Part shown: piece by piece, positions 3,818 to 54,825 of the stretch
Position numbering within the stretch: the first letter of the stretch is position 1
How the letters are laid out: every line of letters starts with the position of its first letter
From: Adineta vaga
Taxonomy: Eukaryota; Animalia; Rotifera
Assembly: GCA_021613535.1 (NCBI GenBank)
Contig: CP075496.1
Span: 930,001 to 994,000, forward strand
Reading direction: 5' to 3'
DNA length: 64,000 bases
Notes under the pieces: generated by a model
The model's database searches: none
Seen by the model: only the letters and a program-made list of their open reading frames with translations
What the model was told of the DNA's origin: nothing
Program-made: the position numbers and the translations under genes

Positions 3818-4054
3818 TCAAAGTTGGAATGAACGTCTTGGTATTCGCGAAAAACTACCGAGACCACCGTACATATATATATCGTCATAGACGCTTCGTG
3901 AAGGATATGGATGTTCTCCGTCGGTTACTGGATATTTGTATGCCGATGATGAAACAGAAGGTGCTGAGAAAATTGTCAACGCTGCCATTGCACTAGTTGC
4001 TATTGCTACCACTCCAACAACAATGGCAACTACAGCTATTGATTCTACAACCAT
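3818..4054 (-). CDS. Possible small single-pass membrane protein (78 aa)
   Basis: ATG-started ORF with long hydrophobic N-terminus and codon usage like the real genes here; no recognisable family. Confidence 0.3.
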   Translation of the reverse strand: MVVESIAVVAIVVGVVAIATSAMAALTIFSAPSVSSSAYKYPVTDGEHPYPSRSVYDDIYMYGGLGSFSRIPRRSFQL

Positions 4055-4503
4055 AGTTTAATTATAAAAAGTAACTTTGTTGATTGATTATAACGAGGCA
4101 AAAAAAGTAATTTATGTCTATATAAGATACGTATCGTTTAGTAGAAACGAATGCAAAAAAATAATACGCAAGCGTTTCAAATATTTTCTTTCTGCTCTTA
4201 GCTGTCGGTCACGCTATTTGCACATATTTTTCATGTTTTATATTCCTTCGTTAAGCGTTACTGAAAAATCATGTCAGACCAACAAACACATACGTTATAA
4301 TCATAGACACCTTCGAATGGAGGCTTACCAAGAAATAGTTATGAGATAAACGAAAATAATATGTATATCTTTCTAACAGAGAAAATGAATCTTTCTTTCG
4401 TTCTATATTTCAATTGTATTAATAGAATTGGGTCAAAAACTAAATCCTTTAGTATTTACGTATAATAGAAGGTGCATTATTAAATTCTTTTCTTGTATCG
4501 CAG

Positions 4504-4676
4504 TAGTGTCAAACTTGAAACTTGAATTCAATTGAAACTGTTCAATTCAAGTTTCAAATGAAACTATCTGCCACACACCCTCAACCAGCTATTACCCCAC
4601 ACAACATGCAATTAAAATTTTTTTCAATTGAAATTTTTCTTTTCAATTGAATACAAATTTCAAGCTTTACATGTAT
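4504..4676. mobile_element. MITE-like element, copy 1
   Basis: Starts TAGTGTCAAACTTGAAA and ends TTTCAAGCTTTACATGTA (imperfect inverted ends, internal TTCAATTGAA palindromes). Both ends recur joined together at 9579-9632. Confidence 0.5.
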
Positions 4677-4816
4677 GAAGAATTTGAAAGAAATCGACGT
4701 CAATGGGAAGAAAATTTCAATAAACAAGGATTTCATGATCAAAATTCTTCTCATTCGTAAATTTCACTTGTTTTTTTTTTCTTTTTAGAAAATCAACGAA
4801 AAAAGGTCTTTTTTGA
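4677..4816 (+). pseudogene. Septin (SEPT7/peanut-type) C-terminal fragment
   Basis: EEFERNRRQWEENFNKQGFHDQNSSHS + intron 4757-4788 + KSTKKGLF*. This resembles the SEPT7-group C-terminus (F..E...WE...QNSS...KKG(L/K)(I)F*). No upstream exons; it abuts the MITE. Confidence 0.6.
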
Positions 4817-9943: not shown

Positions 9944-10131
9944 GACGATGGAAAGTGGAATTATGATCGTCGACACTGTCCTTCACACATAAATAAACAT
10001 AATGCTACATCATTATTAACTTCTACGGATTACGAAAATCTTATTTTTTTCTCAATGATATCTCCAATGTTCATGAAAAGAATATCATGAAATGTATAAT
10101 AATTACAAAAAAATGGTATGAAACCCAAAAG
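9944..10131 (+). pseudogene. Decayed finger exon of the unknown C2H2-like family
   Basis: AG/GT-bounded exon with 'RHCPS' and 'EYHEMYNNYKKWYETQK' in shifted frames, matching 'YRCPSDP...DWHDIKNNYEKWYMEKK'. Confidence 0.55.
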
Positions 10132-10375
10132 GTAAGTTCAAAACATATGATTTAGTGAAGTTTAACAAAAAATCAAATCAAAAGCTTTAAACATGATACC
10201 AAGATGAACCTTAAGAAATTATATTTATTTGATTTTTTTATGGTACTTTCTTCTCTTAGGAACTTTGGTTATCATGGGAAAATGCATTACTACGTGAAAT
10301 CTCGGTTATGATTTGTTTAAAGAACAAAAATTAATTGCTAAAAAGAGAAGAAGAAGGTCTATCGATTCGATAATT

Positions 10376-10545
10376 TACTACATCCATATTCCATCAATCG
10401 TTCTCTGAACAATTGTTTCATTACAAAGATAAAACGAAGTGACAATAAATGGAAAAAAATGAATCTAAAAATACCAATTTGGCTCATCACTTTCAATTAA
10501 TTTGGCATTCAATCATGCTTGAATTTATGCATTAAGATCAGTCAT
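10376..10545 (-). pseudogene. ENY2: ENY2 pseudogene (old decayed copy)
   Basis: [19 protein letters not shown] / MKQLFRERLMEYG versus intact [21 protein letters not shown] / [13 protein letters not shown]. Confidence 0.75.
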
Positions 10546-10710
10546 TGCTTTGCCAAAGAAAAATGGATTGAAATAATCTAGAATAAAAGAAATAAAGCGA
10601 TGTTAGTATTGATAGAAAATGATGTTAATGTTCTATGTTTAAGGAGAAAAGATAAATACACGATTAAAAAAATAAAAAAGACAGAACAATGAGTCTTTTA
10701 GGCTATTCGA

Positions 10711-10780
10711 TTAATAAAATGATAATCGACTCTAACTTTGAAGACGATGAAAGAATGGTATCTATGTCCAAATTATTTTT
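10711..10780 (-). pseudogene. Decayed NDUFA10 3'-end fragment
   Basis: Reverse complement aligns to the NDUFA10 last-exon sequence (aataattggga...accattctt...caaagttggactcgtttacc.ttttattaa) with indels. Confidence 0.6.
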
Positions 10781-11270
10781 TATAAGAAGAACTTTATTCA
10801 ACATATCATATTCGTAAATAAGTAAAAGATAGAAATCCATATAAAATAGATTCAACAGAAGACTACATGGACACATGCAGAAATCACATTTATTGATTAT
10901 ATTTTTTTAAATTTCCCTTAAACTTAGTTAAAAGTTTTTAACAGATTTTTCATAATCAGTATGAAAACAATTTCGTCATATACAGACGAAAGATGTCATC
11001 CATAGTTAAACATCGCCGAATTTATTCCTTTCAATTTTCACTATCTTTTTTTTCTTCTTTTCTATTCCACTTGCATTTTGATAGATATATACATATACAT
11101 ATGTATATATACAAATTGAATGGTTAGTTAATTGTTTTTCTTTTCGTTTAGTATCTTTACTTGATAAAAACTTTATCATATACTTATCCAAGTTCATGGT
11201 CGCAAAAAAACAAATTATTTTCATGTAAAATCGAATGATTACATTGAATTATTGTTTTAGATTTCGTAAA

Positions 11271-11853
11271 ATGGCACATCCTATAGACGTGGTTGTGGAG
11301 AAAGTTACTCGTCGTACATTGAAGGAGTTCAATGTTGATTTTGTATTCTTACAAAAAAGTAAGAGAATGTTCATAAATTAAATATCTGTTTAATAATCAT
11401 ATGTTGGATTTAGAAGACTCTTCGTTTTTCCGATGTCCATCAGATCCAAAAGAAAATTGCATCGATGAATTTGCAAATTCAAATGATTTTGAAAATATAA
11501 AAACTATATTTGAACATATTTACAAGTGTCATCGAAACGATTGGATTGAAATTACAAAGAATTTCAAAGATTGGTATATTGAAAAAAAAGTGAGTTCTTG
11601 TACCTTTAAGAATGTTTTCACTGCTGCATTTTCATGCTAAAAGATATGCTTTCTGATCAATTTATAAGATTGTCTCATATGATTTTTCTTTCTTTTTTAG
11701 AATCTTTTTTCATCAACAGCTTCATCATCATCGATCAACGAACTCAATCAAACGATTTTAACTAGCAAAGATTTCGAAGATTATGTTGATAGAAATATAT
11801 CATCATCAACAACGACAACAAAAGATTATGTTAATAAAACTTTCATTGATAAA
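11271..11853 (+). CDS. Unknown family member, exons 1-3 (atypical C2H2-like finger + Ser/Thr linker); apparently the only intact copy; 3' exon(s) uncertain
   Basis: Exons 11271-11358, 11414-11589 and 11701-11853 splice in frame: MAHPIDVVVEK...FRCPSDPKENCIDEF...IFEHIYKCHRNDW...WYIEKK...LTSKDFEDY...TTTT. Paralogous exons occur at 32-34 kb and 39-40 kb. Confidence 0.7.
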
Positions 11854-12564
11854 GTAAGTTCATTTGTTTTTATATGAAGATGATATGGGTGAATGTGAGC
11901 ATCTGTTTTTTTTTATTATCCACACTCTTTGTCTATCGATAGATAAGTTCTATTCGTTTTACCTTCTATCCATAAGGAAATTTAGAAACAAAATAAATAG
12001 AAATTTCAGTTAAAAAGCAAGAATGAAATTTCTATAGAAATAGAATTCCGAATAAACTTTCTTGCGCGTCCAGATATTCACTAAGACCTATTGAAAGTAC
12101 AGATATTTTATGAAATAGTGGTAGTTCTTAAATTGCGCAAAACTCAATTAGATTTAACAATAAATATCAATTCGTATTTGTAATGTTCTGAGAGAAAGTT
12201 TTCTTTGACATCTATAGATTATCTATGACTTTTTTAATACTATTTATCGAAGAGATATCTTCATGTTTCCTTTCCGTTATTACTTTTTGTAAGAAATACC
12301 TCACTTTGTCTTCTAGTTCAATTGACATTGAAAACAAAGAGATGTTGCTTTTATCATGTAGCAGATAGTTTGATTGTTCGTAATATGATCGAGAGTAAAT
12401 GTATGGAATCGATGATAATTTTGTTTTCAATTTTGACATTTCCAATGTCAATCAGATAAGATGAAATTAGAGACTTTTTTAAGGAAATGTACAAGAGTAT
12501 TAAGTGAACGCTTTTGAGAGGAAATTGAGAATGAAGAAAGAATTATTCATGTTAGACAAAATGC

Positions 12565-14700
12565 TGTTTGACCAATAGCATTCAACATAGAGATAGATCA
12601 ATTCTCTGCTTTGATCAATAGGAAATAGGAGGAAGAGGAATAGTATTGTCTGATGGCGTTGATAACAATGCTCATGAGTTGGTCCCTATTTTACATTGAA
12701 ATATATTAGTGTCAAATTGACGAATCGATTTTATTATCAAACATTGAGACAAGTACATAAATTGATTGACAGATTGTATTTAAAAAATACCATGGCCGAA
12801 GAACTTGATTCATCTTTAACACCATCAGTAAGAACTTTTAGTTTTTTGTACCTACAGTGGTTCAGAAAAATGTTTGATGAAATATTAGTGATAGAATAAA
12901 CAGACTTTGAATAATATTTCGAATATGAAATATTCTGTTGAATGTTTACAGTAAGAAATTCATAGAGACAGATTCCGTTTTATAAATGGTAGAATTCAGT
13001 CCTAAATTGTAAGGATAGAATCCACCAACGGAAATAAATATCGTTTTGTCGATTAGATAGAGCAAAAAGCTTCTGTTTTTGGTTCAAAGGTCTTATTGTT
13101 TTTTTAGTCAAAATTTCTTTCCACAATTTACTTTGTATTAGCTCATGACGTATTTTTAAGATAATATAATATGCATTTGTTTTCGTCAAAAATTGCGCGA
13201 ATTTACATGTTTAAAATATTTTGTGATAATATCTATATTTATCGTAGGATCAATCAATCTCGTTTAAGTTTGTTCATATTTTCGATTTTTCGTTTCACTT
13301 AACATGACTAATTCAGATCTGTAATACATTCATTCACAATAACGTACTCAACAAGCATTCATAGTTAACATATCTGCGGTGATTAGACATCTTCAAGTAA
13401 AGGTACTAAAAAGATCTTATGTGATCGCACCATAGTATTAACTTGAAGAAGAAAGGCTATATGTATTTACAAACAGTCGGACAAATAGAATATATAACAT
13501 ATAGTTTTTGATAATAGAAATATACAAATATGTGCTTGTAATAATCTTCTGCATCTTCAATCATGCGTCCTATTATAAAGCGCTCGACATGCAAACGAAA
13601 GTACTCTGTACTATTGAAGATAAAATAGATCAATACAAACATTTTGGGGATGTCTTTTATCTATCTCAGCAATAGTTATCAACTCTCACTCATATGTAAA
13701 TGCATTTTGACGCGCATGTATTAGGATAATATAGAGCTGAGTAAATTGGGTTTCAATGAATCTCCCTTGTATCCCTCTACCTTCTCTGATTAACTGATAT
13801 TTTATTCATTTTTCTGTTGCTTACCTGAGGATTTATATTTGTTTATGTTTTAGGATCAACGAAAAATCATGGCGAATACATTTCATGAAATATTTAGTGA
13901 TTTCAGTGAATTGGTGAACAAGGATATAAAAACATTTTCAAATAGTGGTCTAAATGTTAACGAATTGAAAGGAAAAATTAAAGCACATGCTGCAAATTTG
14001 ATAAAAGAAGTAGAAAAACTATGAACACATTCATTTTAAATTTTGTTACATTTTGTCTTTTTCTCTTTGTTATATTTCCATTGTATTCTATAATAAACAT
14101 TCTGATTTTGATCAAACACTCACAAAGTTTTTAAGTATATTTTTCTGTCACATATTTATTTTCATGATGTTTCCACTTTTTAATGTTATTAAACTTACAT
14201 AAAGTAGATTGACTTTGAACAAATCTGGAAATATGGTGACATTCTCTTAAATGAGATAAAATCCAAATAAAATAATAAAAAGAGAATTTCATTTGAATGA
14301 AGAAATAATTAATTGCTTTAATATTTTAATTGAAAGCAAAAAACATTGTATTTACAGATAGTTTCAATCAAGCTATTTGATTTCTTCGGATGCATAAATA
14401 AGAAAAAGCTTGGAGAATCGGCGGAAAAGTTGTTTTCAATTTTGACACTTGCTTTTCTCAATTAATTAATTTGAAAATCAAGATTCATGAATAAAATGTA
14501 GAAAAGTTTTAAATGAACGTTTATGATCAGTGGAGGTAGTAAAAGTTGAAATCATCTGAGAAGAAGAAAAGAAGAAAGAAAGCATTATTCATGTTGCACA
14601 AAGTGCTATTTAACCAATGGCATTCGACAACGAGTTAGGTCGATTCTATGCTTTGATCAATAGAGAATAGGAGAAAGAGGAATAGTATTGTCTGATGCCA
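12565..14700. repeat. ~2.1-kb segmental duplication, inverted copy at ~36360-38490
   Basis: Near-identical reverse complement; ORF-track peptides 12696/38158, 12980/37868 and 13457/37413 are almost identical. Confidence 0.95.
12792..14024 (+). CDS. Short 'MAEE' family gene (12-codon exon + 56-aa helical exon, 68 aa)
   Basis: Exon 12792-12827 MAEELDSSLTPS|GTAAG; phase-0 exon 13854-14024 DQRKIMANTF...ELKGKIKAHAANLIKEVEKL*. The same pairing recurs three more times. Confidence 0.55.
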
Positions 14701-15642
14701 TTCTGTACAATGCTCATGAGTCGTTACTTATTTTGCTTCAAAGTTCACTAGTCTACGATTTCTCGTTCATTACAAGCAAAACAAAAGAAGAATGGCGCAA
14801 GAATCTGGATCATCATTGTCTGTAAGAAATGTTGTTTTTGTGAACATGCATAATTTTCTCTTAAGAAAACTTCCCTTATTTGTGATTTAGTTGAAATAAA
14901 TAAAATCGAAAACATATACATTTCTAATGAAACATCACGGCGAATATGTCTACGATGAGTCGTCTTTAGAAACACTTCAATACTTCGTGATTTTCGTAAT
15001 ATATGGTACGACTGAGCGATAACCATAATGTCAATTGCATTTGAGCAGAACCAGATATGTAATCGTATTTATAAAACCAAATTATCTTCTTAACATTTAT
15101 AGTTTAAGTGCGTACGTGTGCGGATTATTTATCTCGCGAAACAATTTTCTGTATGAGAAATGAGATTTTAAGACAAGAATGATCTAGATGGATGATATAG
15201 ATGGAGAAAAGACTTCTTCACTTTCACTCATACCATCATCCATCAAATTCTTCTTACATACTACTTCACCTTCAACATTAAATCGAAATATTCGTTGTAT
15301 TTATAACTACGTACGTCTGTTCTCTCTTTATATGTGTTTATATACTTGTAGCAAAATATTTAGAAGTTTAGAATTATTTAGTTCGTTTGTCTTCGCATCG
15401 AATTTATTTCCTTGTTAAAGAATAATTTCCTTTTTCAGTTCGTCAGTTACATTCATGTTGTTAGATACATCAATCAAACTAGTAAAAATTTCACGTGTTA
15501 TAATTCGAAAATTTAGGAAATCTTACATAGAATTCGTGAAAAGGATATTGAAATTGATCGACAGTTAAACAAGTTAAAAATCAATCTAAATATGAATGTT
15601 GAATGATTTGATAATAATGAATTATATTTTTTATCATTTTAG

Positions 15643-15813
15643 ACCAATAACATCGAAAAAGTTTTGAATTACATCGAAGTATCAAATGAATTACATGAAA
15701 AAATAAATAAACAAATATCAGATTTTAAGAAAAACAAAATCAATGAACTGACATTGAAAGCAAATATCAATAAATTACAAATGGAATCTATGGAAACATT
15801 CAAGAAAATATGA
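15643..15813 (+). CDS. 56-aa helical terminal exon, paralogue (upstream exon(s) probably from 15188)
   Basis: TTTTAG acceptor, TNNIEKVLNY...SDFKKNKINELTLKANI...FKKI*; same length and F28/L38-K39 register as the other copies. Confidence 0.55.
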   Translation, partial: TNNIEKVLNYIEVSNELHEKINKQISDFKKNKINELTLKANINKLQMESMETFKKI

Positions 15814-16336
15814 CATTTTCTCTCATAATTTCTTTTTTCTTATGCTATCATTCGATTTTGATTGTCGACATCACTTGTATTTCTACAAACTAAAGAGTTT
15901 TTTATCTATTAGATTATTCATATAAAAAAGATTGCTCGATCATCGTATCAATATGTTCATAACATGACGATAAACATGAATACTTTTACAAAGAAAATCT
16001 AATTAAACTATTTATTTGTTTGTTATATACCACCTGATTAATTTAACGTTTTATCCATGATGAACAAAAGAAACCGTATGCATAAAATAAGTATATATTC
16101 AAAAAATAGACCTTTCAATCTATATCAAATAAATATCATTTTGACTGAATCAGTGGAAAAAAATTTATACGTTTAATAATGAGTTCAACAAACTCCAATC
16201 GTCCGAGACATCGTACATCATCTTTCGATTAAATAGTATCGTTATCAAGTTGAGATCATTCTAAATGATACAATTGTTAGTTTTCATTATTGTTCAGCAT
16301 TTTATTTTCTGTCAGAAGCCCCTATAGTGTCTACTT

Positions 16337-16903
16337 TTATTCCTCATTTTTTGATACAACAATCGAACTCGATTCTATTCGACTATCAGACAAAAGTTTC
16401 TGCAATGCCAATTGTTTATCATGATCAACTTCCATCAACTGTTGTCTTTGCTGCTGCTGTTGATTTGATTTCTTTTTCTTGTTCTTAAATAATACTTCAG
16501 GTGTTGTTGGTTGGCTTTGATTCATCGATGCTGCATTCATTTGAAGTAATTGTTCAATGCAATAATTCACAAGATACTTTTTACATTGTCGAATACTTCC
16601 ACCAACATGAAGTGTTTGAATCGAACAATCGTTCGAATCATTTGCTAATCGACAAACGAATGTTGCTGCTATTTTTAATAGATGTTTATCATCACGCAGA
16701 CATCGAACAATTGCAACATGTGTTGATGAATTATAATAAATAACAGAAAGATTTCTTATAAAATGAGCAACACCAACATCACCATATAATCGAGCAATCA
16801 TTGATTCTATTGTTGAATGAATTTGTGATGATTTAATCACACTTGTTGGAGTTGAATGAAAATGAAATTGAAAAACAAAATAACGACGTTTGACACGAAC
16901 CAT
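16337..16903 (-). CDS. POP5: RNase P/MRP subunit POP5, copy 1
   Basis: MVRVKRRY..., LYGDVG, IVRC, TLHVGGSIRQCKK: Rpp14/Pop5 family motifs. Confidence 0.9.
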   Translation of the reverse strand: MVRVKRRYFVFQFHFHSTPTSVIKSSQIHSTIESMIARLYGDVGVAHFIRNLSVIYYNSSTHVAIVRCLRDDKHLLKIAATFVCRLANDSNDCSIQTLHVGGSIRQCKKYLVNYCIEQLLQMNAASMNQSQPTTPEVLFKNKKKKSNQQQQQRQQLMEVDHDKQLALQKLLSDSRIESSSIVVSKNEE

Positions 16904-16955
16904 TCTATCTCTATTTTAATATACAATACAATCTAGAAAACTAGGAAAAAATAAA

Positions 16956-17596
16956 CTAATGATCATCTTTATGTTCTAAACGTTGATATTCTTCTCGAAT
17001 CTTTTTAATTCGTTCCTTTTCCTTTTCAGGATTTATATAATAAGGTCTTCGAACAGGTTTTCTCAAAACACCCGTTTCACGATATTGTGTTCGTTCATCC
17101 AAATACATTTGTGTACATTCTTCACGAAACTCTGGATGATGAAACCTTCAGAAAGATATAAATATATAGAATTTATATATAATTCACTTACCATTTCATC
17201 AAACATTCATTCATTGCTTTGACTTCTTTTCGACATTTGATAAATGACCATGCACCATGTTGCTCACCACATTTACCAAATTCTAAATAAATATAGAGTC
17301 ATTGAGATATCTTCTTCTTTCTCTTGATTAATCTCACCGTTAATAAAATCATGACATTTTTCTCGATGTGCACGTTCTCGAATGATACCAGGTATACAAA
17401 CTTCTATTTCAACTTTCCGTAAACTTTTGTCACTTGGATCACCTACATAGGAATATAAGTTAAAAAGAAATGAAGCATTCATCAAATTAAAATTCATCTA
17501 ACCAACACCATGAGGACCACCTCGATATCGACCAGCAGATACAAAATTCTCTGAAAAGATTTCTGTTTCTTGATCTGTATTTGTATGACTACTCAT
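16956..17596 (-). CDS. CMC1: COX assembly mitochondrial protein CMC1 (twin CX9C), copy 1, 4 exons
   Basis: GDPSDKSLRKVEIEVCIPGIIRERAHREKCHDFINEFGKC...KCRKEVKAMNECL...EECTQMYLDERTQYRETG. Confidence 0.9.
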
Positions 17597-17724
17597 ATCT
17601 GAAATAACTTTCATATTTCTTCCATTATCTATATAGAAATCTTTGTTTTTTTCTTTATTATTGATTTTTTTCAAATAACAAACAACATTTACAGAAAGAC
17701 AAAAAAAGAATAATTATCATCCAT

Positions 17725-18178
17725 TTAGAGTTCTTCATGTTTTGATAAATATTGACGAAGAACAGTCAACATTTCTTTTTTGATTGAATCAGGAACAAGT
17801 GCTAAATGTATATATATGAAACATAATTCGATATGAATGTGAAAGTAGAAGAAATACTTACTACGGCCTTTTGGCGTTATTTCTTGAACAAGTTCATCAA
17901 CTGTAATATTTTCGAGACCTTTTTGTTTAACAATATCTAAAGAAACAGAAATTATATCATATCGAATTGTACTTTATTTCTTACCTTTACAATAAGCTTT
18001 CATTTGATCTCTCCATCCATATTCCATCAATCTTTGTCTTAATAATTGTTTCATTCTATTGATAGAAAACAAATTCAAATCAAAAATTGAACGAGTAAAT
18101 CTATTACCGTTCTCTTTCACCACTTTCGATTAATTTGGCATTTAGCGATGCTCGAATTTGTGCATTTCGATCAGCCAT
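17725..18178 (-). CDS. ENY2: Transcription/mRNA export factor ENY2 (Sus1), copy 1, 4 exons
   Basis: [67 protein letters not shown]. Confidence 0.93.
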
Positions 18179-18309
18179 TTTAGTTATCAAATTAGAAATG
18201 ATCTAAAAAAAGAAATGAAGAACTAAACTGGTCTTCGTAACAGATAAATACACGATGAAAAGAAAAAGGAGAAAAGAATCGACTCTTTTTTTAATTGAAG
18301 GATATTGGA

Positions 18310-18378
18310 TTAATAAAACGGTAAACGAGTCCAATTTTGATAACGATTAAAGAATGGTCTTACATCCCAATTATTTTT
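18310..18378 (-). pseudogene. NDUFA10 C-terminal fragment
   Basis: NNWDVRPFFNRYQNWTRLPFY* versus NNWDIKPFFFRHQSWTRLPFY* at the end of the full gene. Confidence 0.8.
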
Positions 18379-18945
18379 TGATTCGGTAATATTTGGAGAA
18401 ATTTCATTCATTACTACACGCAATGATCCTACATAAATAACAATTAGGAATTCTGCAGACGTTTTCATCATAAAACTAGGAATACGTTTTGATATTATGT
18501 TCATCAATTATATTTTGTGATGTTTCAGTTGAAATTAATATAGAATTTTTTACACGATTTGTAATCATGGATTTAAGCAACTCGGTCCTATTGGGACGAA
18601 AGATGTCATTAGTTCAAGCACGATTCAATATATTTTTAATTTTCTATGTTTCTTTTTCTGTGTTCATTTCACACGTATACTTATCGATATGTATGTCTGT
18701 ACATCTATTGGACATTCAAGTTAAATTCATCCAGTTGATTTCCTTTTTTCAACAAATGATACTATTCTCATGTTCCATTGATATCGATCAATATTCACTC
18801 AGTATAAAATAGAAATGTTCTTTTAGATCAATACCAACTAGTATTCATACTGTCTTTGATTCTTTGCTCGTGTTTAAGAAATGTAAGATAAAATAATGTA
18901 GACACGTTTCATTTTAAGTTATTTATGTTTAGTCGTTGAAAATAC

Positions 18946-19839
18946 ATGGCAAGATTGATTGATGCCGTGGTGAATAAATGTATAAAAGAATTATCGTCTA
19001 AACATTTACCTATGGATTTTATATTTTTGCAATTTACTAAGAGAAAATGAATTCTAAATCTCATAATTTAATTGTCTGAAAAATAACCTAATGTATGACG
19101 TAATGTACTATGTTCTTCTTTCTTTTCTGTACGCTATACACACCTGTATAAGATACATAAAGTGCCGTTATAGCAACGCACCATCTATTTATCCTGTTCT
19201 TCTTCTTTGATATTTTACTGTTCTATTTCTCTTCTTTTATCTATTCCCAGGTCTAAGAAAACAGCCCCTTAAACTACTTTAAACGATGGGAAAACGTCGA
19301 AAACCGGCACCAATACGCTACCGCAATCCGGAGTGACGAATTACGGTGAAATACGGTCAAAATTAAGGCGGTAAATTGCTATTTTCTAACCGTTTTCGGT
19401 CGTTTAAGGTGTCGTTTCCGACCTCCCGAATGATCGTCCTATGGGGAGTGATTCTGATTGCAGATTAAAACTTCAAATAATAGTGGAACAATCGCAAGTA
19501 TGTCAACATAGTCAGAAGTTGAGTAAATTGTTCACAATAGTTAACAATGTTAGGGAAATATATTTGAAAACAATGAAGTCATTTTCTACTTGGACATAAC
19601 GACATAAAGCACTTGTTCTTTATTTAAGAGTCAAATATATGAACTGATATGAAAAATTTTTATTTTAGGATCAAAGAAAACAAATTGGGTATACATATTT
19701 CAACCTGATTACTCAACTTTAATCCAGTGTAGCACACCATGTAACAGCATTTACAGACGGTCAAATAAGTCATCCAGAATTAAAAAGTGCTTTAGTTTCA
19801 TCATACAAAAGTCAAATTGAAAAGATCAAAAATCTTTAA
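18946..19839 (+). pseudogene. Unknown-family pseudogene: exon 1 plus 56-codon terminal exon, middle lost
   Basis: Exon 1 MARLIDAVVNK...DFIFLQF with donor reading CTAAG instead of GTAAG; MITE at 19246; terminal exon 19669-19839 has an internal TAA. Confidence 0.6.
19246..19445 (+). mobile_element. CCCAGG-ended MITE, internally deleted/degenerate copy
   Basis: GC-richer island starting CCCAGGTC; reverse complement of 20727-20998 minus an internal segment. Confidence 0.75.
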
Positions 19840-20509
19840 TCATCTTGCTGTTGGTCAACATATCACATTTATGTCAATTCTATATGAATTTTAAACACTT
19901 GATTAACTTTTATTGATTCTATCTTCAGATACATGTATTGATCTCATCATCTTCTCTATTTTCATATCATTCTTCTGTTTCACTATATTGTACTCTATTC
20001 ACTTCATTATAGTCATCTTGAGGGTGTGGGTGTTAGTATTACATCTATCTAACACCCACGAGTTTTGAAGAGTATAAAAAGTAATTAGCTAATTAGCTAA
20101 TTAGTCATGAGTAGTTGAGCAAAACTAACATCGGACTTGAGATCCTTGATCCCGGAAACCTGAAGGTTACATTTTTCTCGCTAACCAGATCAGTTTTTGC
20201 CAGTTTACTGAATGCTGAATTCCGATTGGATAGGACAGACAAACTTTTTGCATTTCAAGCCGATGATTTTAACGCTGTATAACCCTTTCTTTCAGAAAAG
20301 AGAATAGAAATTTGGATCCATTCTCACTCTCATTCACATCCTTGTATGTATTTAACCCAGTGTGTTATATATGAATAATTCTACACATTCGCTCCACATG
20401 TCATATGTTCATCTAAAGAAAAAACAAAAAAAATGGTTTTTCTTCTGTTTCTTGTTCTTCAGTCAAAAGACTATAGTGTTCAAAAGATTAATCACATTTC
20501 TTTTTTTTA

Positions 20510-21062
20510 TCAGTGGTTCAAAATGGAAACAAGTACTAAAACGTGTCTATCCGAATGAATCATTTTTAACTTGTTTTTTTTTGTTATTTCCATGATATCA
20601 GCAACACCATCAATCAGTTCTTCTAAAAGACCTTTTTTAGGAGGTTTATTCAGATATGCCACGTGACCTTGTCGACCTGCCACTATCATTTTCAAATGTT
20701 TGGAACTTAAAATATAAACAAAATTACCCAGGACAATCATTCCGGTGGTCGGAAACGGCGCCTAAAACGACCGCAAACGGTTAGAAAACAGCAATTTACT
20801 GCCTTGGTTTTGACCGTATTTCGCCGTAATTCGGCACTTCGGACTACGATCGCCGTTTTTTGCTGTGAAACGACCACCTTTTTACATCGTATTTCTATAC
20901 ATTTCTGGGTTAACGGATTATGGTGGCGTATTAGTGCCGGTTTTCACCGTTTTTCCATCGTTTAAGGCAGTTTACGACGTCGTTTTCTTCGACCTGGGAT
21001 GTTTTGTTTAACATCTTTCCAAATTCATAACCATGCAGCTATTTTGGAACGTTAGCAGCCAT
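20510..21062 (-). pseudogene. Unknown ORF interrupted by a MITE
   Basis: MAANVPK*LHGYEFGKMLNKNI|NFVYILSSKHLKMIVAGRQGH...; removing 20727-20998 rejoins the frame; early TAG present. Confidence 0.4.
20727..20998 (-). mobile_element. CCCAGG...CCTGGG MITE (272 bp)
   Basis: Terminal inverted repeats CCCAGG/CCTGGG, non-coding GC-richer interior, second copy at 19246. Confidence 0.85.
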
Positions 21063-21466
21063 CTAAAAGATGAAATGAAATGCCTTGTACACAATATAAT
21101 TGAGATTTAACAGAATGGATTTCAAACATTGCAGAAATTAGTCATTTTCATTTACATATTTTTTTAAAGTTTTGCTCTAACTCTAAATAAATTTCTTTGT
21201 CGATAGGATAGAAATGTTGATTCACTTACGTTAGATGGATTTCCTCATTATAATCAATTCGTATCTAAACCTTTTCGTACAGTTTATTTAATTTTTCAAA
21301 AGACTAATAATTTTTAAAAAAGGCAACCACGCCTTCAAATTTATTTTTGCAGAAAAAGAGGAAAAAAGTCGATTAAGGAGATAATCCAATAATAAATTGT
21401 TCAATGAAATTATCTGACAACAAAGTAAAATAGTTGACTAGATCGATATGTAAATATAAGACACGA

Positions 21467-23082
21467 TCAAATTGTTGTAAATTGTACACGTATTTGTCGA
21501 TTTTCATTCACTTGAACTTGTTTGATTGTTCGACCTTGTTCACCATCTAAATTCAATGCTGATGTTCGTTCAACATTTGTACATATCATTTGAATTTGTT
21601 CAGTTCTATTTGTAAGAAGATTCCAAAGACCTTTCAATCGATCAGGTAACAAAGGTCCACCATCAATTGTTAACATTGTATTCGATTGAAAATGAACATT
21701 TAAATATTTTAATGATGAATGAAGAAATGGACGTGGTGAAATCAATGTCGGTGGAATACCTGCTAATGTACCCGTCAATGCCATACATGTTCGTTGAGAT
21801 TTATTTAGAAGAAAATTAAATAAACTATTTACAGATGATAAATCTCGAATAAGAATTGTTGTTGAACGTGTTTTATCATTTGAAGATTTCTTCTTTGTCG
21901 ATGTACAACGTCGATCATTATTGGCAGTTGTTGATGATGTGGCTGATAAACCCATATCTTCTAACCATTGAGCACATTCAGCATCATTTTCTTCAGCATT
22001 TACATCATCTTCTTCTTCATCATTATTTTTATTTAATGAATCATCACCACTAAAATATAGAAAATAGATTATGTTTGTTGTTTTTATTCATCTAACGAAT
22101 GTGAACATACTCCGCCATTGTAAATTCGATTCCTTCGCGTTCTAATGTTGATCTTAGACCACTTGTTGTTGGACTAATAACTGCAAGAATTTGTTGTGAA
22201 GAAGGATCTTCTCGAAATAAGATGTTGAATGTATGTGTACACATATAGAAAAATGTCGAATATTTCGTTCGAAATGCTTGAAAAAGTGATTGAAATGCAC
22301 TTTTCCATTCATCTTGTAAGGCTATTTGTGCTTGTTCATCTAACGAGGAAAAATTTACATTAGTTTGTTGTTGCTGTTGTATACGTGGAAATAATTTTAA
22401 CCAAGGAATGTGTGGATAGGTCCAATAAGATGTTAATGAACGGAAAAGTGCTTTATCATTATCTTGATTTATATTGGAACAAATGTATTCCAATGCAAGT
22501 GATTCATCAGTTGAACGAAGTTTCATAAAATGATTTAAGAATTCCGATGAGGAATTTAATGAATGAAATCGACAGGAGGATTTCAATGACCAATCAATTG
22601 GAAATGTATCAAAAATTTCATCAGAAATTTTATCTAAATGTTAATTTTAAAATAGAAAATTCTAGAAAGAAAAAGATTAATTTACTTGATTCGACTGGAC
22701 TAAATGCTTCGTCAAATGAAAAACTTTTCATTGTTGATTGAAAATGAAGATCATTTGATACGTTTGTTGATGGTGGTGGCATAATTTGATGAAGTTTAGC
22801 GAGAAGATGTTCATCATTTGACTTTTCTGATGTTGTTGTTGTGAGAAGATTTGGTGTCAGATTTTCATCTGCTGTTGGTGTGGAAATAGAACGTGCTAAA
22901 GCAAATTTATTAATCATCGGACGATTTCGTTTAGCATTGAGTTTTTGAGGATTTTTCTCATTTGTTGATGACGAAGGTGTTTGAAGAGATAAATCCGAAT
23001 TAATTTTATGACGAATACGTTTTAACGATATTCGTGATGGAACTTTCCATGGCGAAAGTGGTTTTCCGCCGTTGAAATCCAT
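21467..23082 (-). CDS. DONSON: Downstream neighbour of SON (DONSON/humpty dumpty), 3 exons
   Basis: PIDWSLKS, YWTYPHIPWLKLFPRI, FYMCTHTFNILFR, ISPTTSGLRSTLEREGIEF, GIPPTLISPRPF. Confidence 0.92.
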
Positions 23083-43897: not shown

Positions 43898-45524
43898 ATG
43901 GTTGCCGTCGTTGTGGGTCTTCGTACAGGTGGACAAACAATAAACTCTTTAACATCATTCTTAGAAAGATTATGCGAGAAAGAACAACGAACATGGAAAG
44001 AACGAATCTTCAATCAGATGAGATTAGTAAGTTTTTATCTTTTGTCATATAAAAACATCTGATTTGAAAGGACGAAGAAAAACATATTTTTTGTTTTTAT
44101 GTTGTTTTTTTTTCTCTTCTTCGATCTATTTTTGTCTCCTATATGTAGTATAACACTCTCTTCTTGTTGACAATTATCATGCTGATCAAAAGGCCAACAT
44201 AACTTTTTTTCAGAAGAACCGAGCGAAACAAATATAGATAAGAATAGTTAATACTCTATTTACATCTGGTAGAGAAGAGACACAACTGTTTGGAGAGATA
44301 AATAAACATTCTTCCTTTCTTCCTTTCGATATAATCGCTATTCATCAATCTTTTTCTTTCGAGGCTGATCGTGATTGATATCTTTTTCTTTCTTTCTCTT
44401 CTGTCCTAGATGACATAGGGATCTATGAAAAACAAATTTACTCTTAGGTTAAACATATGCAAAGTTTTATGACATTGTTAATATCGATTTGAATTAATGT
44501 TGATTTTCATATTAATATTTGATCAATTTTTAAGGACGAAGTGAATAGTTCTCAACGCAATCATGCATCCTTATGGCTTCGTAAAGTGGCCGTATCAATG
44601 CATTTTGGTATTGATACATATGCACTTAGTGTTGATTTACTCGATCGATTCTTGGCTACACTTAAAGTAATTCTTGAAGAAAAAAATTTCGATAGAGAAA
44701 AACATAAATTTTTATCGTTTAGGTTCGTCCGAAATTCTTGGAATGTTTGGCAGTCGGTTGTTTATATATAGCAGCGAAATGTAAAGAAGAAGATGATACA
44801 ATTCCTATCACACCTGAATTTGTTATTGATTGTAATGCAAGTTGTTCAGCAAATGAACTTCTTCGTATGGAACGATTAATATTAGAAAAATTCAATTGGT
44901 TTGCTGACTTTGTAACATCAGTCGATTTTCTGCAAATAGTAAGTTAAATATCTGCATAGTTTCAAATGATTATCGTATTACTATGCTATTGTTATTGTTT
45001 AGTATTTTACATTGTTATTATTAAAAACCGGAAATCAACATGAAGGAGAAGAAAATGCAAACGTTCTAGTGGATAAATATACGGATTTAGAATTAAAATT
45101 AGCTTCATGTTTACAACATCATCGTTTAGCATCATTTAAACCAAGTATTTTAGCATTAGCTTTGATTAGTTTAGAATTAGAAAAACAACAAGTACAAGAA
45201 CCTGAAATGAATATTGATTGGCTTGCTTTGATTAGTTATTTACAACAATTAGCTAAAGTAAAGATTTTAAATTAAGAACAAAACATCACACATATTTTTC
45301 TTTATTTGTTATTCAAGGTTGAAAGTGATGCGTTATTATCATGTCGAGATTTAATCGTTCGTCTATCACCATCCTACAAGGTTGTTCGATTAGAATTAGC
45401 TGATCTTGCTTTTATTTCCCGTGCTTATAATCCTTCAAGTTCATTGAAACCATTGATTACTTTACCTGGTCGACCAACCTATGCCGATGTTGTTTGTGGT
45501 CGTGTTGCCTCTGCTGTCCAATAA
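43898..45524 (+). CDS. CCNI: Cyclin I (cyclin G/I family), 5 exons
   Basis: SQR....WL, LSVDLLDRFLATLKVRPKFLECLAVGCLYIAAKCKEED, CSANELLRMERLILEKFNW, FKPSILALALISLELE, DWL.L...LQ. Confidence 0.85.
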
Positions 45525-47560: not shown

Positions 47561-48067
47561 ATGCTTTCGACTCTTTTTTCGTGTCGATCTGTTTCATCAA
47601 ATCAATTATGTTTTTTATTAACATCTGTTCTTCGTTCTACAATAACAAGTACAACAAACAAGAAATCTGATGAAGATGCAGAACATAAAAATCGTTTATC
47701 AATAACAAAAAAAATGCGTCTATTAGGTTTACAAAGTCATCAAGCCCGTAAAGCATTATCTATCTATGATGATTATGTTCATCGACAGAAGAAATTACCT
47801 GATTTACGTATGTTTGCAGTTGCAATTAATTGTGCGATGATTGCTGAAGATTTATCGAAAGGTCGTGAAATTCATCAATTTATTGAAAGTGATTTTCCAC
47901 ATTTAAAAGATAATTTAATGTTAAAACAACAACTACGTTATTTTTACATAAAATGTAACGATCAACAATCAGCTGATAAACTTTTTCAACCATCATCAAC
48001 AGAAACACAACGAGATAAGAAATATTCATCTTCTAATTCTGATCAATTAGATAAAAGAAAAGAATAA
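47561..48067 (+). CDS. Short pentatricopeptide-repeat protein (plant PLS-like motifs), likely mitochondrial
   Basis: ALSIYDDY...KLPDLRMFAVAINCAMIAEDLSKGREIHQFI...NLMLKQQLRYFYIKCNDQQSADKLF matches P-L-S consensus (PD..TF..+L.AC.....L..G+.IH ... L+..Y.KCG....A..+F). N-terminus is Ser/Arg-rich and free of acidic residues. Confidence 0.75.
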   Translation: MLSTLFSCRSVSSNQLCFLLTSVLRSTITSTTNKKSDEDAEHKNRLSITKKMRLLGLQSHQARKALSIYDDYVHRQKKLPDLRMFAVAINCAMIAEDLSKGREIHQFIESDFPHLKDNLMLKQQLRYFYIKCNDQQSADKLFQPSSTETQRDKKYSSSNSDQLDKRKE

Positions 48068-48880: not shown

Positions 48881-51800
48881 TCATGTCCTTGATGAAGATC
48901 TTGGATTTATCTTTATAACATTTTCCAAATGAAGTGGTTCACCTGTAGCCGAACAAACAATTTCCAGATGCGCTGTATATCGCGAATTTCGTGATGAGTT
49001 GGACGTATTTGTTGAAGACGGGATTGGTAGCTAAATGAGAAGTTGTTAGTTGTCGCCAAGCAAGGAAAAGTTGATACTTACAGGAGTAACTTCAGTTATA
49101 GAAATATTTTCCAACGTTACTAATATTTCACCATTTCCTAACAGTTGACCATTTCTTTTTTGCTTTCCACATTTAGTCGGATCGTTCCTAAAAAAAGATT
49201 CGTATTAATAATGTTATTTAAAGAGAAAAATATAGTAATTTGTTGAAGTATCTCTTACATCGCGCTTTGGATCATAGTTTTAAAATGAGCTCGTTTCATT
49301 TGTTGTATAATTGTATTGGTTGGAACTTGTCTTCCTTCAACTTTGTATCTATTATCTGTTTGGTTATTATTCTCTGTACTTGACTCTGACGGAAAGCCAT
49401 AATCATCCACTTGATGTTCACTATTTGCGATATGCTTATCATAAAATAACATATGTTGACTATTTTTTCTTTTTGCACCACCAATAAATAAGGTATCATT
49501 GTGATATTGTCTCAGAAATTGTATATCATACATTGCTGCTGCCAATTGTGGTTTATTTTGTTCCATTTGTGTAACTGTTTGTTGTCTTAATTGCTGTCCA
49601 TCATATCCAATTTGAGAACCAATTGCATTAAACAAACAATCAAATCTAGAACAAAATAAAAGTAAAAATTTTTTCTCATGTTATTAATTCATTTTTTTAT
49701 ACCCTTCAGTATTTTGAAGATTTTCTCCATTTGGTGTCGTCCAATGTCCTATATCATCTGGTGTATCTGGAGGAATATAAACTAATTCAACTGCAGGTTG
49801 AGATGTATCACTACCAATTACTTGTTCAACTCGTCCATTTGTATCACGAATTATAAATCTTCTCTTAGTTACATCAGATAAATATCCAATATGATGAATT
49901 CCACCTGGTGCTCCATATTTTAAATCTTGTATTTCATCATCTGCAGCTGTTAATGATACATCATTGACTTTTTCTTTCCTTTCAGCTTCGCTTAATTCTC
50001 GATGATAAACAACATTACGTTTCATATGGAAAAGATCCAATTGATTATTAATATTATTATTGAAATTTGACAATAAACCATTTACGCCAGCTGCAACTAA
50101 CGGTGGAACAAGAGCACATTGTAAAAATTGACAAACTATTTTGCTGATTTTTTGCGTGATTTCATCGGAAAATTCTTCCACAGTTAAGAATAATTGTTCA
50201 TTTTCAGCTTGTTTTTCGTGAGTTTGATAACCATTAGAATTCTTCGACTGTTGTGGCTCAGCACATTTTACTTCATTTAGAATTTTTTTCACATCTTCTG
50301 ATTGACCTAACTTCTCAATCTCCTTATCGAGCAGGAAAGCAATGGTAGTTAATTGTTTGAGTACAGGTGTTAATTGTGCGCTCACTGATATGGCAGTTGC
50401 AGTAGCAGCACTAACTTTCGATGAAGTTAAATTTAATAGGATTCTACCAATTGATGAACAGCATTGTTCAAATGCCGGTTGATTGATTTCATTCATTACT
50501 TTTTGTGTTAATTTACTGGCGTAAAAACGATTTCTTCGTTTTGCGTCACAATCCATCAAACGACGTAAACTTTCATTATTTTTATAACGTAATTTAAATA
50601 ATTCAGTAATACCACTCTGAATACATTCTTGAACAATCGGTAAGATTGTTGCTGATATTCCATAATTAACTAATGACATAGATACTTCAATCGCAGCACG
50701 TTTAACTCCTTCAAAAGCCAATTTCTTTCCGCCAATAATAAGACCTTCTTTAAAACTTTTCGTCCAAATTTCTTTCACACCATTGGAAACAGCATTTTTC
50801 ACGGTCATTGCAGCATTTTTAGCAGTTCGTGCCGCAGCTTTTAATGCACTAAATCCAGCACAAGCAATAGTTATGGCAAAACTAATTGCTTTTTGTATTC
50901 CCCATTGTTTCCAACTAAAATTTCGATTGATAATTCCATCTTTAACACAAGTAATTAAATCACTAATTCCTTCTTGTAAAATTGAAAGACCGAATCCCGC
51001 TCCAGCACCTGCACTGAATACAGCCAATGACACACCAACCAGTGCTTGTCCAATTCCCATTAAACCAACACCAATTACTGACCACCAATCAATGGGTTTT
51101 CGTTCATTGAATATAATAGTTCCGATAAATCCATTTGTTTCAAATAATTCGATCTCTTTGGCATAAAGTTCTTTCTTTTCTATTGAAGGTAATGATTCAA
51201 TCAATGGTATTCGTTCAATTTTAATTTCTCGTTTATTGTTCAAAGCACTTCCAAGTATTCCATTTTCAATTGACAATTTATTTTCTTCTAAATATTTCAG
51301 ATAATCTGTTAATTTTTTTCTTTCATCATCAGTTAACTTGTTTTCATCAAGTTGCAATTTCAAGTTTTTTAATTCTTCATCAACTGGACGTCCTATAGCT
51401 GCATTAATTGAATTAATTAAAGTACCATATAAATTTTTTAAATGAAGTAAATACTCATGAAGAGGTGAAGTATCTGATGCGACTGGAAATAACATCAGTG
51501 TTGGATCTAATACATCATTAATAATTCTTCTCGATTCTTTGAAATCATCAATCGATTTTTTCAGAAAAAATACATCGTTACTTTTTTTATATTGCAATGC
51601 ACGAGCATAAGCTCTACTATAATAGGCGCTTGCAGCAATATCTCGATCCATTTCAATTGCTTTATCCAACATTTGGATGGCGTCAGCAAGATTTTTTTGT
51701 TCTTTTAAATAAATATTTGCCATGTTTACGTAATACATTGGATTGTCAATTAATCGATTTTCAGGATCATGTGAACAATCGGATTTAAATTCATCAAATG

Positions 51801-54800
51801 ATTGTTGTAAACTTTCATGGTTTTTTGAATCTGATTCAATTAACCATAAGCCAAATCTTTCTCTTAAAGCATTTTTAGCTGCATCTTTTTTATCTGAAGG
51901 AAAGGGATCAATAATCACATTTTGTAAATCACGAAATTTTTGAAATAATTCATCTTTAATTAAAATTTCGTTAACTTGTTTTAATGCTGAATGAATCATT
52001 TCATTTTGAATTATATCTCGATATTGTCTCATGTCATTTAATAATTGGAAACCATTTTTATCATCATATTGACATGTTTGTGTGGCTTCAGATAAATCAA
52101 TAATAAATTGACTTGTACCTCGATAACCTATACGTGAAGTTCTTCCCTGATTCTGTCGTTCAACACGATCATTATCCGGTAAAAAAGTAATACAAACATG
52201 TAAACCACCATTTTCTTCTACTTCTTTACTCACAGGTATATCAGTTCCTCGTCCGGCAATATTTGTGGCCACAATTACGCATCCAGCTTCTAACGTATCT
52301 GTTACAGCAACTTTTTCATCGGCTTCAGTATACAATCGGATCGAATTTTGTGGAAGTATTGCTTGGAGACATTCGCTAATGCGTTTTGCTTTTTCAATAA
52401 ATTTTGTAATAATTAAAACAGCTCGTTTCTGTCGTAGCTTTTCTGTTGAACTGTTAGAAATATATTTGAGCCAAACTGCCTCCGAATAAGTAAATCGTGG
52501 TCGTAATTCTCGATGACGACGTTCACGAAACGGTGGAATTATCAGACAATCAGCAGAATAAATTTCACGAAATAATTGTTGAGTGGATTCATCACCAATC
52601 GTTCCAGTTAATCCGATTAAGTTTGTCTGATAACGTTTAAAAAATGTTACATGAGAAATAAAATTTGTTGTAATATGTTCAGGTTCAACAGCACAACCAT
52701 GCTTCATTTCTAGAAAACAATGTAAACCATCATTCCAACGCATTGTATCGTGTATAGTTCCGGTGTTAGCTGCATCAACATAAACAATTCGTTTATTTTT
52801 TATAATATACTCTCGACCTTCTTTCATTTCAAACTTTGCATAAACAGCATTTCTAATCCATCTGGATAATTTACTTCGAGTGAAATTCTGTAAATGTTTT
52901 GGAATAATTAATTTTTCTTTTAATGAATTACCAGTTGAATTGTCATCTAAGCGAATATGATCTTGAAGTAATGGTAAAATAAGTTTTTCAGCAAAGTCAT
53001 AAATAGATTCATTTAATAATTCAGGAACAGTATTATTATTTTCATCTTCGCATAATTTATACCAATGATCATTTTTACATGAAACAATTTTTGCTAAATT
53101 GATGACTTGATTCCATATAATACCTTTGACTGGTAATAAGTAAGATACAGCAGGAACAGAACCGGAAAGACGTAAAAGATGTTGTCGACCATCAATCATC
53201 ATATTATCGACTTCATCAACAATAGCAAAATCACATTTTCGACCACATCGAACTCCATTTTCATCAAATTCATCTCGTAAAATATCTGCTTCGAAATCAT
53301 CGGCGGAACCATAAATTACATCAGCTTCATAAACTGGATTAAACTGGAAAAATTTTGCTAACATCTGTCCTAGTTTTCGACATTGTCCATATTCATAATC
53401 TAAACTGGTTGTTTCAGCATTGCAAGCTACATTTAAATGAAAAAACGTATAGAAAGTTTTCATTTCTTTAGATTGAATTTTTGCTAATTCGCTTGAACTT
53501 GTAATTACATCAACTTTGAATCCTTGTAAACATTTAATCACAGCTAAAACAGAAACAATTCGAGTTTTTCCTTCGCCAGTATTGATTTGTAAAACTCGCG
53601 ACGAATCTCCACGAGAATTCAAAGCTAAAAGCACAGACAGCCTCTGTGCTTTGTGCATTTTTTTACCAAATAATGAATTCGAAACATGAATGACAAACGC
53701 AATTTGTGTATAATAATCTTCATTTTTAATATTTGACATAAAAGATTTCAATTGATCGATTTCGGTAATATGTGAAAATTTATCCATCATTTTCATAAGT
53801 GTTTCAAAATTCATTAATAATTTGTTCTGCTCAAATGCTGTTAGAGAAGTACGATTCATATCATTAATCGTCTCAGTCAATTCATTTAAATTCAATTCAT
53901 TCATTTCAGAGGGAAAAGACATTTGTAATGCATATGCATGAATCTTTTTTGGCCATGTTGATGCATGTTCATTGTTCTTTCTTAAATCAAATACATGTCG
54001 ATCATAACGTAATTCATAATCAATAATAATCCAAAGAACGCTATTTAAATATTGAAGATTATCTTCGCTTTCAACCAGTTCGATTAATTGAAATATATCA
54101 TCCGTTTCCCATAAGTTCATCATTGTCTCAAGATTTGAACATAGTTCATTGTAAATTGACATTGATGTAATTGATTTACCAATTTTTCGATCGATTTGTT
54201 GAATAAAACTAAAGCAAAGAAGTTTTTTCTTACACATACCAATATTAATTGTAAGATTTTGGAGAAGAAATGTTTCTAAATCACCAATAGTTAGATGTTT
54301 AACATCGTGAGTGAAACAATCGAAAAATTCTTTAAGAACAGAAATTGCAAATGGTAGTGGAAGTGAAGATATAAATTGATCGATAATTTGAATATTACAT
54401 TGAAAAACATTTCTTGAATTATATAATTGATTTTTAAGAGTGTTTTCAGTAGTATTATTTAATAGTTGTGGAAGATTTTTTTTTATCCATAAAAATTTTA
54501 ATTCAACGAGAATTTCATCGAAATCAGTGCCTTGTTTTTTACAATTTGTTAATAAATATTGAATAACATGTGGTCCAATTTGAATATAAATAAAAAGTTC
54601 CGACAAATTACGAATATGACAAAGGTACGGTGTAGTTGATTGTCGAGTTATTATTGTATCAAGAATTTCATCAATAGGATGAGCATTTGGAACTTTTGAT
54701 ACAGCAATTATTCGATCTTCGAGTTCTGAAATAACGATTGGATTAATAATACATGACGAAGATTGTTGACAATTAATAATAAGAATTTCTAATTTATTTT

Positions 54801-54825
54801 TCCAAGTTCTTGATTTATCAGCCAT
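48881..54825 (-). CDS. Large SecA-like ATPase protein with TM hairpin, permuted OTU-like domain and C-terminal domain (~1,900 aa, 4 coding exons)
   Basis: QINTGEGKT, VDVITSS.ELA, ILRD, AIVDEVD, NTG..RWNDGLH.FLEMKHG, GLTGT, ATNIAGRGTDI, GGLHV, RVERQNQGRTSRIG. Introns at 49702-49646, ~49258-49188 and ~49081-49031. Confidence 0.88.

Follow-up and report, generated by a model that had tools for sequence, protein, structure and literature searches.

The window analyzed here is a 64,000-nucleotide stretch of the genome of the rotifer Adineta vaga (GenBank assembly GCA_021613535.1, chromosome-scale contig CP075496.1, positions 930,001 to 994,000). It carries on its minus strand the gene I4U23_017445, which encodes a public 1921-residue protein (P0001). 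Sequence profiles and a predicted structure together give good support to the reading of residues ~1620-1764 of this protein (window 49968-49477) as an OTU-type papain-like cysteine peptidase whose halves follow the order found in the bacterial deubiquitinase (DUB) EschOTU. Self-cleavage by this permuted OTU after its terminal Gly-Gly is plausible and well motivated by the sequence and the model, and we put its chances at about even. A preliminary description of the window had claimed a circularly permuted OTU at this place; the claim is supported by swapped profile matches, by a confident model that best matches EschOTU and by the near-invariance of the catalytic Cys, the catalytic His and the aromatic residue after His.

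Results

Layout and conservation of the module

The first (His) half of the module lies at 49703-49968 and consists of a GAPGG helix and four strands up to G-H-W, as judged from alignment to the C-terminal halves of canonical OTUs and from a model with predicted local distance difference test (pLDDT) values >90. A 57-nt GT..AG intron at 49646-49702, seen in the sequence and in transcript contigs, separates it from the second (Cys) half at 49477-49645, which was delimited by a Cys-half profile and by Gly-Gly conservation and which comprises an FDCLF Cys box, a helical arm and a terminal L-F-I-G-G. All of these features are on the minus strand. GAPGG (within Y-G-A-P-G-G) is at 49900-49914 and GHW at 49741-49749, with the catalytic His at 49744-49746 and the gatekeeper Trp at 49741-49743. 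Exon 2 opens with FDCLFNAIGSQIG, and the catalytic Cys codon is at 49638-49636. LFIGG follows 52 residues past the Cys, its Leu at 49491-49489 and its Gly-Gly at 49482-49477. In P0001 these sites correspond to G-H-W 1693-1695, Cys1711 and Gly-Gly 1763-1764, with Ala1765 next. The positions originally assigned to the His, the Cys, the Gly-Gly and the intron all hold on the minus strand.

Relatives were collected by running a three-sequence profile against 1.84 billion representatives, which recovered 179 at E<=1e-3, including 104 at E<=1e-10. The motif order was identical in all of them, and the pattern is far beyond chance. Conservation was calculated over 100 relatives spanning the whole module. 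The catalytic His is conserved in 98% and is followed by W, Y or F in 100%; the catalytic Cys is conserved in 98% and the Leu after it in 91%. The two residues of the terminal Gly-Gly reach 92% and 94%, the Leu at P5 82% and the Ala at P1' 50%. The N-terminal GG motif, which is structural in canonical OTUs, is conserved in 52-74%, below the terminal Gly-Gly and the P5 Leu.

Sequence profiles match OTU proteins with the halves swapped

A profile built from 101 relatives was compared with all PDB sequences. The top matches were OTU proteins, with OTUD5 first (E=3.6e-7). On OTUD5 the halves were swapped, profile positions 36-88 (GG helix and strands) aligning to residues 119-173 and positions 101-150 (Cys box and helices) to residues 55-108, and yeast OTU1 gave the identical swap. 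The His half of the module thus aligned to the C-terminal half of OTUD5, and likewise to those of OTUD3, OTUD1 and Otu2. A profile of the Cys half only matched OTUD3 (E=0.0023), OTUD5 (0.021), OTU1 (0.047) and also OTUD1, in each case on the N-terminal Cys box, and the catalytic Cys was aligned in each of the OTUD3, OTUD5 and OTU1 matches.

Single-sequence and library searches were less sensitive. The window gene was searched exon by exon, and work on the contiguous chain used the P0001 record and an intron-less paralog on contig C6. The module gave no above-threshold match in Pfam and NCBIfam scans of each exon, the contiguous C6 paralog and the relatives. The Pfam OTU family (PF02338) appeared at E<=0.01 in 21 of the 101 relatives, mostly weakly and over one half only where seen. 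A phmmer search of the C6 paralog C terminus against PDB sequences found no match, so that the family profile was needed, and an Atlas feature search returned sub-threshold leads only, including one OTU cluster at 0.86. No CE-clan sequence was among the matches of the 101-relative profile, the Cys-half profile or Pfam. Two hits, P0018 (20 repeats of profile positions 43-108) and an NHL-repeat match (6d69), were rejected as false positives caused by the strand motif.

The predicted structure resembles EschOTU

An AlphaFold2 model of P0001:1603-1921 was compared by VIA-align with 48,161 representative chains. The model has pLDDT >90 over residues 11-160 and consists of helices, then four strands, the last of which bears His92, then a helix that Cys109 opens, and a helical arm. 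The pLDDT drops from 94 to <50 within a few residues past the Gly-Gly (161-162) and is <50 from residue 165. The best match was EschOTU (6w9s_A), with Z=7.5, which is in the middling range by VIA-align's own scale, and a root mean square deviation of 3.5 A over 115 residues. Model residues 19-153 aligned collinearly with chain residues 199-345 across both halves, and together with the swapped profiles this places the module in the EschOTU-type topology, an OTU core in which the His half precedes the Cys half. This score stood alone, the second-best match being 4.8. CE-clan chains came next at Z 4.0-4.8 (NEDD8 protease 4.8, PopP2 4.5, OtDUB 4.4 and Ulp1 4.3), and canonical OTUs covered model residues 1-99 only, through their own C-terminal halves, at Z of about 3-3.6. 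Foldseek alone returned nothing significant for the module model (best E=0.63), though its list was dominated by OTUs; TYMV PRO was among the weak fold matches. A Z of 7.5 would be middling on its own, but the two independent sequence matches agree with it, and the permuted-OTU reading is therefore well supported.

The Gly-Gly junction and a proposed self-release

Across the relatives, the Gly-Gly is the boundary between the constant module and variable tails. The module is the last constant domain of its host protein, and a variable toxin-type tail always comes directly after it. Conservation of the Gly-Gly among homologues, on which the preliminary description had staked its proposal of cleavage in cis, was found (92-94%), and the motif marks a domain boundary.

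We propose the following mechanism. The strand half with the general-base His comes first and the Cys helix with the helical arm second. The peptidase would be specific for Gly-Gly through the aromatic gatekeeper after the His, because an aromatic residue after the catalytic His limits P2 to Gly in DUB families (PMC7391069). In EschOTU, as given in the relevant part of its description, helical-arm residues 338-343 contact bound ubiquitin and its Arg74 (PMC7396840); they correspond to approximately model residues 146-151, about ten residues ahead of the Gly-Gly, and the permutation would therefore put the C terminus of the chain close to where the substrate channel opens. At that point the L-F-I-G-G of the module itself may act as a mimic of the ubiquitin tail, entering the S5-S1 sites in the ubiquitin-tail direction, and a cut between G1764 and A1765 would release the C-terminal domain, which in this rotifer lineage would be a degenerate RNase A-like fold, probably without RNA cleavage.

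Toxin-type tails beyond the Gly-Gly

The tails were sorted into 30 classes. The largest has 50 members and the next two have 6 and 3; four more are pairs, and the other 23 hold a single sequence each. Known toxin nucleases are among the tails, namely AHH (E=3.1e-11) and Endonuclea_NS_2 (both by Pfam). The model of the commonest class (pLDDT 97.7) has an RNase A-like fold, and its best match was 5e3e_B, the contact-dependent growth inhibition (CDI) toxin of Yersinia kristensenii (Foldseek probability 0.98; VIA Z=7.7; 104 of 114 residues), followed by frog RNases at Z of about 3. The profile of this class found no match among PDB sequences. The class conserves H-P-x-x-H and T-F-Y-P motifs, and T-F-Y-P resembles Thr276 and Tyr278 of the toxin (PMC5435912), in which the catalytic His is His175.

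The tail of the window protein is 157 residues long (48884-49476, minus strand) and is interrupted by the introns 49188-49258 and 49031-49081. It aligns weakly to the commonest class, with GFPSES in place of G-H-P-x-x-H and VIKINP in place of V-H-T-F-Y-P, in a region where the alignment has low identity. The ortholog tail has the same reading as the window tail at the first motif. The tail of the C6 paralog is better preserved, with G-H-P-N-D-H present and most features of the class motifs kept. The window tail itself (model residues 237-312) gave a low-confidence model with weak matches to angiogenin and other RNase A chains (Z=3.3-3.8), which agree with the class assignment made from the relatives. 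We class it among the RNase A-like (CdiA-CT Ykris-like) tails as a degenerate member; the predicted catalytic residues are lost, and it is probably not an active RNase. The preliminary description had the segment after the Gly-Gly as a tip to be released; it does lie beyond the domain boundary, but it is no free-standing novelty, being probably a degenerate representative of an RNase A-like class of toxin domains. The ratio of nonsynonymous to synonymous substitution rates (dN/dS) against an ortholog from a bioreactor metagenome was 0.40 for the tail and 0.63 for the His half, and the tail is still evolving under some constraint.

Two wasp proteins of 330-340 residues, P0047 (Ampulex compressa) and P0034 (Mischocyttarus mexicanus), consist of the permuted OTU and an RNase A-like tail only and lie on Mb-scale insect contigs; they are possibly transferred toxin genes. 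In bee-type relatives (P0023, P0024, P0025, P0019, P0065 and P0074) the RNase A-like tail is broken after G-H-P-x-H-H by one or two degenerate permuted-OTU copies, and these inserted copies are without the catalytic His and Cys.

Weighing the alternatives

The features by which an OTU peptidase is recognized are partly present. The Cys box has its catalytic Cys at the start of a helix (Cys1711, model helix 109-118), and the general-base His is on a strand and is followed by a large aromatic residue (G-H-W, model strand 91-94). In linear order the His precedes the Cys, and neither exon nor the contiguous paralog reaches the gathering threshold of Pfam. Besides the middling EschOTU score, several points weigh against the reading that we favor. 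Two positions past the His, where an OTU is expected to have Asp, Asn or Glu, the window protein has Thr (in the family, Thr 67%, Ser 10%, Glu 5%). Two positions before the Cys, the Asn found in 90% of the relatives is Phe in the window copy and its ortholog. The tail domain begins right after the Gly-Gly, without a linker, and a conserved junction motif can also be a mere recombination or structural boundary. Since the module departs from formal OTU features in linear order and in the third triad residue, we file it as OTU-like in its working and as EschOTU-type in its topology. It might instead belong to the CE clan (Ulp1/SENP/YopJ-like), in which the His precedes the Cys by nature and which supplied the next structural matches (Z up to 4.8). 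EschOTU scored clearly higher (Z=7.5), however, and the sequence-profile matches were all OTUs with none from the CE clan, and we hold this assignment to be very unlikely. Another way to read the chain is as an OTU of ordinary order, built from the Cys box, the GG and the tail strands with their His, the upstream His half being the leftover of a tandem copy. The GG does stand ~52 residues past the Cys, at the site of a canonical WGG-type motif, and the tail has H-containing strands. To this reading we give hardly any credence: the tail class folds alone as an RNase A-like domain (pLDDT 97.7; CdiA-CT Z=7.7), the tails are interchangeable, and the module alone is a complete OTU core that aligns with EschOTU.

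The permuted OTU could be a DUB or ubiquitin-like protein protease acting in trans, the heritage of a symbiont effector, with L-x-x-G-G serving only as the end of the domain and as a junction for tail swapping, without self-cleavage. EschOTU and the EmcB family, the two permuted OTUs characterized so far, are DUBs that work in trans (PMC7396840, PMC12501173). The bacterial carriers of the module all have genomes of 0.8-2.7 Mb, typical of host-associated bacteria; one bacterial relative also bears UCH and ankyrin domains; and an orphan cassette, described below, shows the stretch ahead of the Gly-Gly acting as shared homology. What trans activity leaves unexplained is that the Gly-Gly (92-94%) and the P5 Leu (82%) are more conserved than the structural N-terminal GG motif (52-74%), and that the module is invariably directly ahead of a variable toxin tail. 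We regard it as possible, though clearly less probable than self-cleavage. Alternatively, the module in this rotifer lineage may be a catalytically dead relic, kept as a scaffold in a gene domesticated for another role. The Phe in place of the 90%-conserved Asn, shared by the window copy and the ortholog, the loss of both class motifs from the tail (GFPSES and VIKINP) and a dN/dS of 0.4-0.6, which means only moderate constraint, would fit such a relic. However, the Cys, the His, the gatekeeper Trp, the P5 Leu and the Gly-Gly are all kept at ~63-68% identity to the ortholog, and the gene is expressed and correctly spliced, so that we judge this explanation improbable. Self-cleavage after the Gly-Gly thus stays the favored of these functional readings.

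Gene structure and expression

The whole gene occupies 48881-54825 on the minus strand and has four exons (54825-49703, 49645-49259, 49187-49082 and 49030-48881). The I4U23_017445 model contains the intron 49646-49702 as well as the introns 49188-49258 and 49031-49081. In transcript contigs from two studies (four runs), exactly these three intervals are missing, with CT..AC ends on the plus strand; transcription and splicing of the gene thus follow the model. The intron said at the outset to divide the His from the Cys is thus real, by both the gene model and the transcripts. Its position is kept in the ortholog (L027), a protein ~63-68% identical to that of the window, and it is absent from the C6 paralog (G000:C6:1101507-1111487, minus strand; L005/L006), an intron-less open frame of 3327 residues in which both halves of the module are contiguous. 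These two, the window gene and the C6 paralog, are the module copies in the A. vaga assembly.

Upstream of the module, Pfam identified a SecA-like ATPase region (SecA_DEAD, preprotein cross-linking domain and SecA P-loop domain) followed by tetratricopeptide repeats (TPR) at 52126-53844, and a hydropathy scan detected Gly/Ala-rich hydrophobic segments (P0001 ~1247-1283 and ~1310-1332) at 50830-51087, a candidate membrane hairpin; both are on the minus strand. The next listed open reading frame beyond the 3' end of the gene is at 47561-48067 on the plus strand. Farther along, at 44541-45275 on the plus strand, adjacent open frames look like fragments of one intron-split gene.

The chassis and its distribution

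The chassis of the protein runs from the SecA-like ATPase (SecA_DEAD, E=4.9e-33; P-loop_SecA, 1.3e-12; SecA_PP_bind, 5.4e-9) through the TPR, the hydrophobic hairpin and a helical linker to the permuted OTU module. The SecA-like ATPase is common to 49 relatives and the next region of ~680 residues to 67, including a protein from a Bacteroidota metagenome-assembled genome (MAG) and a bee protein. Named sources of relatives are Rotaria socialis, Lasioglossum, Mischocyttarus, Ampulex and a Bacteroidota MAG, and the sequences indicate that the chassis is shared with reduced-genome Bacteroidota, other rotifers and Hymenoptera. The Bacteroidota MAG contains at least five copies. Among 61 related genomes, the module was found in 11, all of 0.8-2.7 Mb; it was found in none of the 24 genomes (1.5-7.3 Mb) in the second part of this list. 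The gene is apparently of bacterial-symbiont origin, and transfer from symbiont-type bacteria to animals is the simplest reading of these sequence data.

A bacterial genome of 1.88 Mb (G020) has a giant gene that closes with the module, M-M-E-G-G and a tail and is followed by a lipoprotein-type gene. An orphan cassette comes next, in which the part from the His strand to M-M-E-G-G is kept and the tail is divergent, and then two lipoprotein-type paralogs. At this locus (L040, G020:C1:651000-658000), positions 1941-5728 thus hold three paralogous lipoprotein-type genes with lipobox-like N termini after the toxin gene and the orphan cassette; the orphan cassette tail is frameshifted. The tails at this locus carry an H...S/T-x-G-C motif, which we presume to be reminiscent of L,D-transpeptidase-like folds. 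At two other bacterial loci a small gene lies 7-9 bp downstream, and one of them has an Ntox33 and DUF4279 pair nearby. On a metagenome contig from ENA (L026), the gene at 10001-22186 encodes a 4061-residue bacterial relative with UCH, ankyrin repeats, the SecA-like chassis and the permuted OTU, with genes for Ntox33 and DUF4279 a short way downstream. By sequence, the layout of the bacterial loci is that of polymorphic toxin systems as outlined in the pertinent part of PMC3482391: the Gly-Gly divides the constant from the variable part, and the downstream genes are putative, immunity-like genes. The constant N-terminal chassis with diverse C-terminal toxin domains, by which such systems are recognized, is present.

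Discussion

Permuted OTUs are already known in bacteria, in Escherichia albertii (PMC7396840) and in the EmcB family of Legionellales (PMC12501173). EschOTU (PDB 6W9S), the E. albertii protein, likewise has the His strand before the Cys helix and was the only structural match to the full module. The module nevertheless shares no detectable sequence similarity with it (EschOTU was not listed at E<=10 in the 101-relative profile search), and EschOTU has Asn two after the His where the window family has Thr. EschOTU is the stand-alone DUB domain of a bacterial protein, and the part of PMC7396840 that concerns it notes neither a terminal L-x-x-G-G junction nor a toxin tail. The EmcB/CoxDUB family, compared here by description only, is also a circularly permuted OTU of intracellular bacteria with the Cys helix in the C-terminal part; its members are type IVB effectors that bear accessory domains for ubiquitin binding and work in trans on the ubiquitin of the host (PMC12501173). 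Canonical OTUs (OTUD5/DUBA, OTUD3 and yeast OTU1; PF02338) resemble the module in the Cys box, the subsequent Gln and Leu-Arg, the GG-helix-strand motif and the His with its aromatic neighbor, and differ in that the module has the half order reversed and Thr at the third triad position and the window protein is under every Pfam threshold. The viral OTU-like proteases, tymovirus PRO/DUB and arterivirus PLP2, cleave the polyprotein of which they are part after small residues, and they recognize ubiquitin tails as well. They have the canonical order and work in viral replication, and their likeness to the module is a functional analogy only.

The releasing and processing peptidases of polymorphic toxins, including OTU-type ones, stand directly before the variable C-terminal toxin, as in the module family. 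The relevant part of PMC3482391 proposes OTU domains as processing peptidases of such toxins and notes SecA-like and OTU domains in Amoebophilus effectors; permutation and an L-x-x-G-G junction are not mentioned in that part. Unlike bacterial polymorphic toxins, the window gene is in an animal genome and has introns. CdiA-CT of Yersinia kristensenii (PDB 5E3E; PMC5435912), a bacterial toxin of the RNase A superfamily, shares its fold and a T-x-Y-P-like motif with the commonest tail class; there is no sequence match between it and the tails, and the window tail is without the conserved His, Thr and Tyr positions. In the literature searched, we found no description of a permuted OTU in animal genomes, of a conserved Gly-Gly junction, of a SecA-like chassis common with symbiont-type bacteria or of RNase A-like tips.

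We therefore put forward, tentatively and at somewhat less than even chances, a reading that joins these elements. A self-releasing permuted OTU, a Gly-Gly clip, would define an undescribed cross-kingdom toxin family with a SecA-like ATPase chassis and with RNase or nuclease tips that can be exchanged. Its path would have led from symbionts among the reduced-genome Bacteroidota to bdelloid rotifers and Hymenoptera, animals that would now express it. The permutation would have been fixed because it brings the C terminus to where the ubiquitin-tail channel opens, and so turns a DUB fold into a cis-acting release device.

Why the permutation is retained in the two bacterial groups with permuted OTU folds described so far is an open question (PMC12501173). 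The family suggests a concrete, testable answer: the new C terminus ends in a ubiquitin-like L-x-x-G-G beside a cargo, and the fold could cut itself. The window gene ties an expressed, intron-bearing animal gene to polymorphic-toxin-like proteins of symbiont-type bacteria, and it would be a further instance of a toxin module passing into bdelloid rotifers and Hymenoptera. Should self-release prove true, the module would serve as a compact release tag defined by its sequence and would help to find cargo domains in large uncharacterized proteins.

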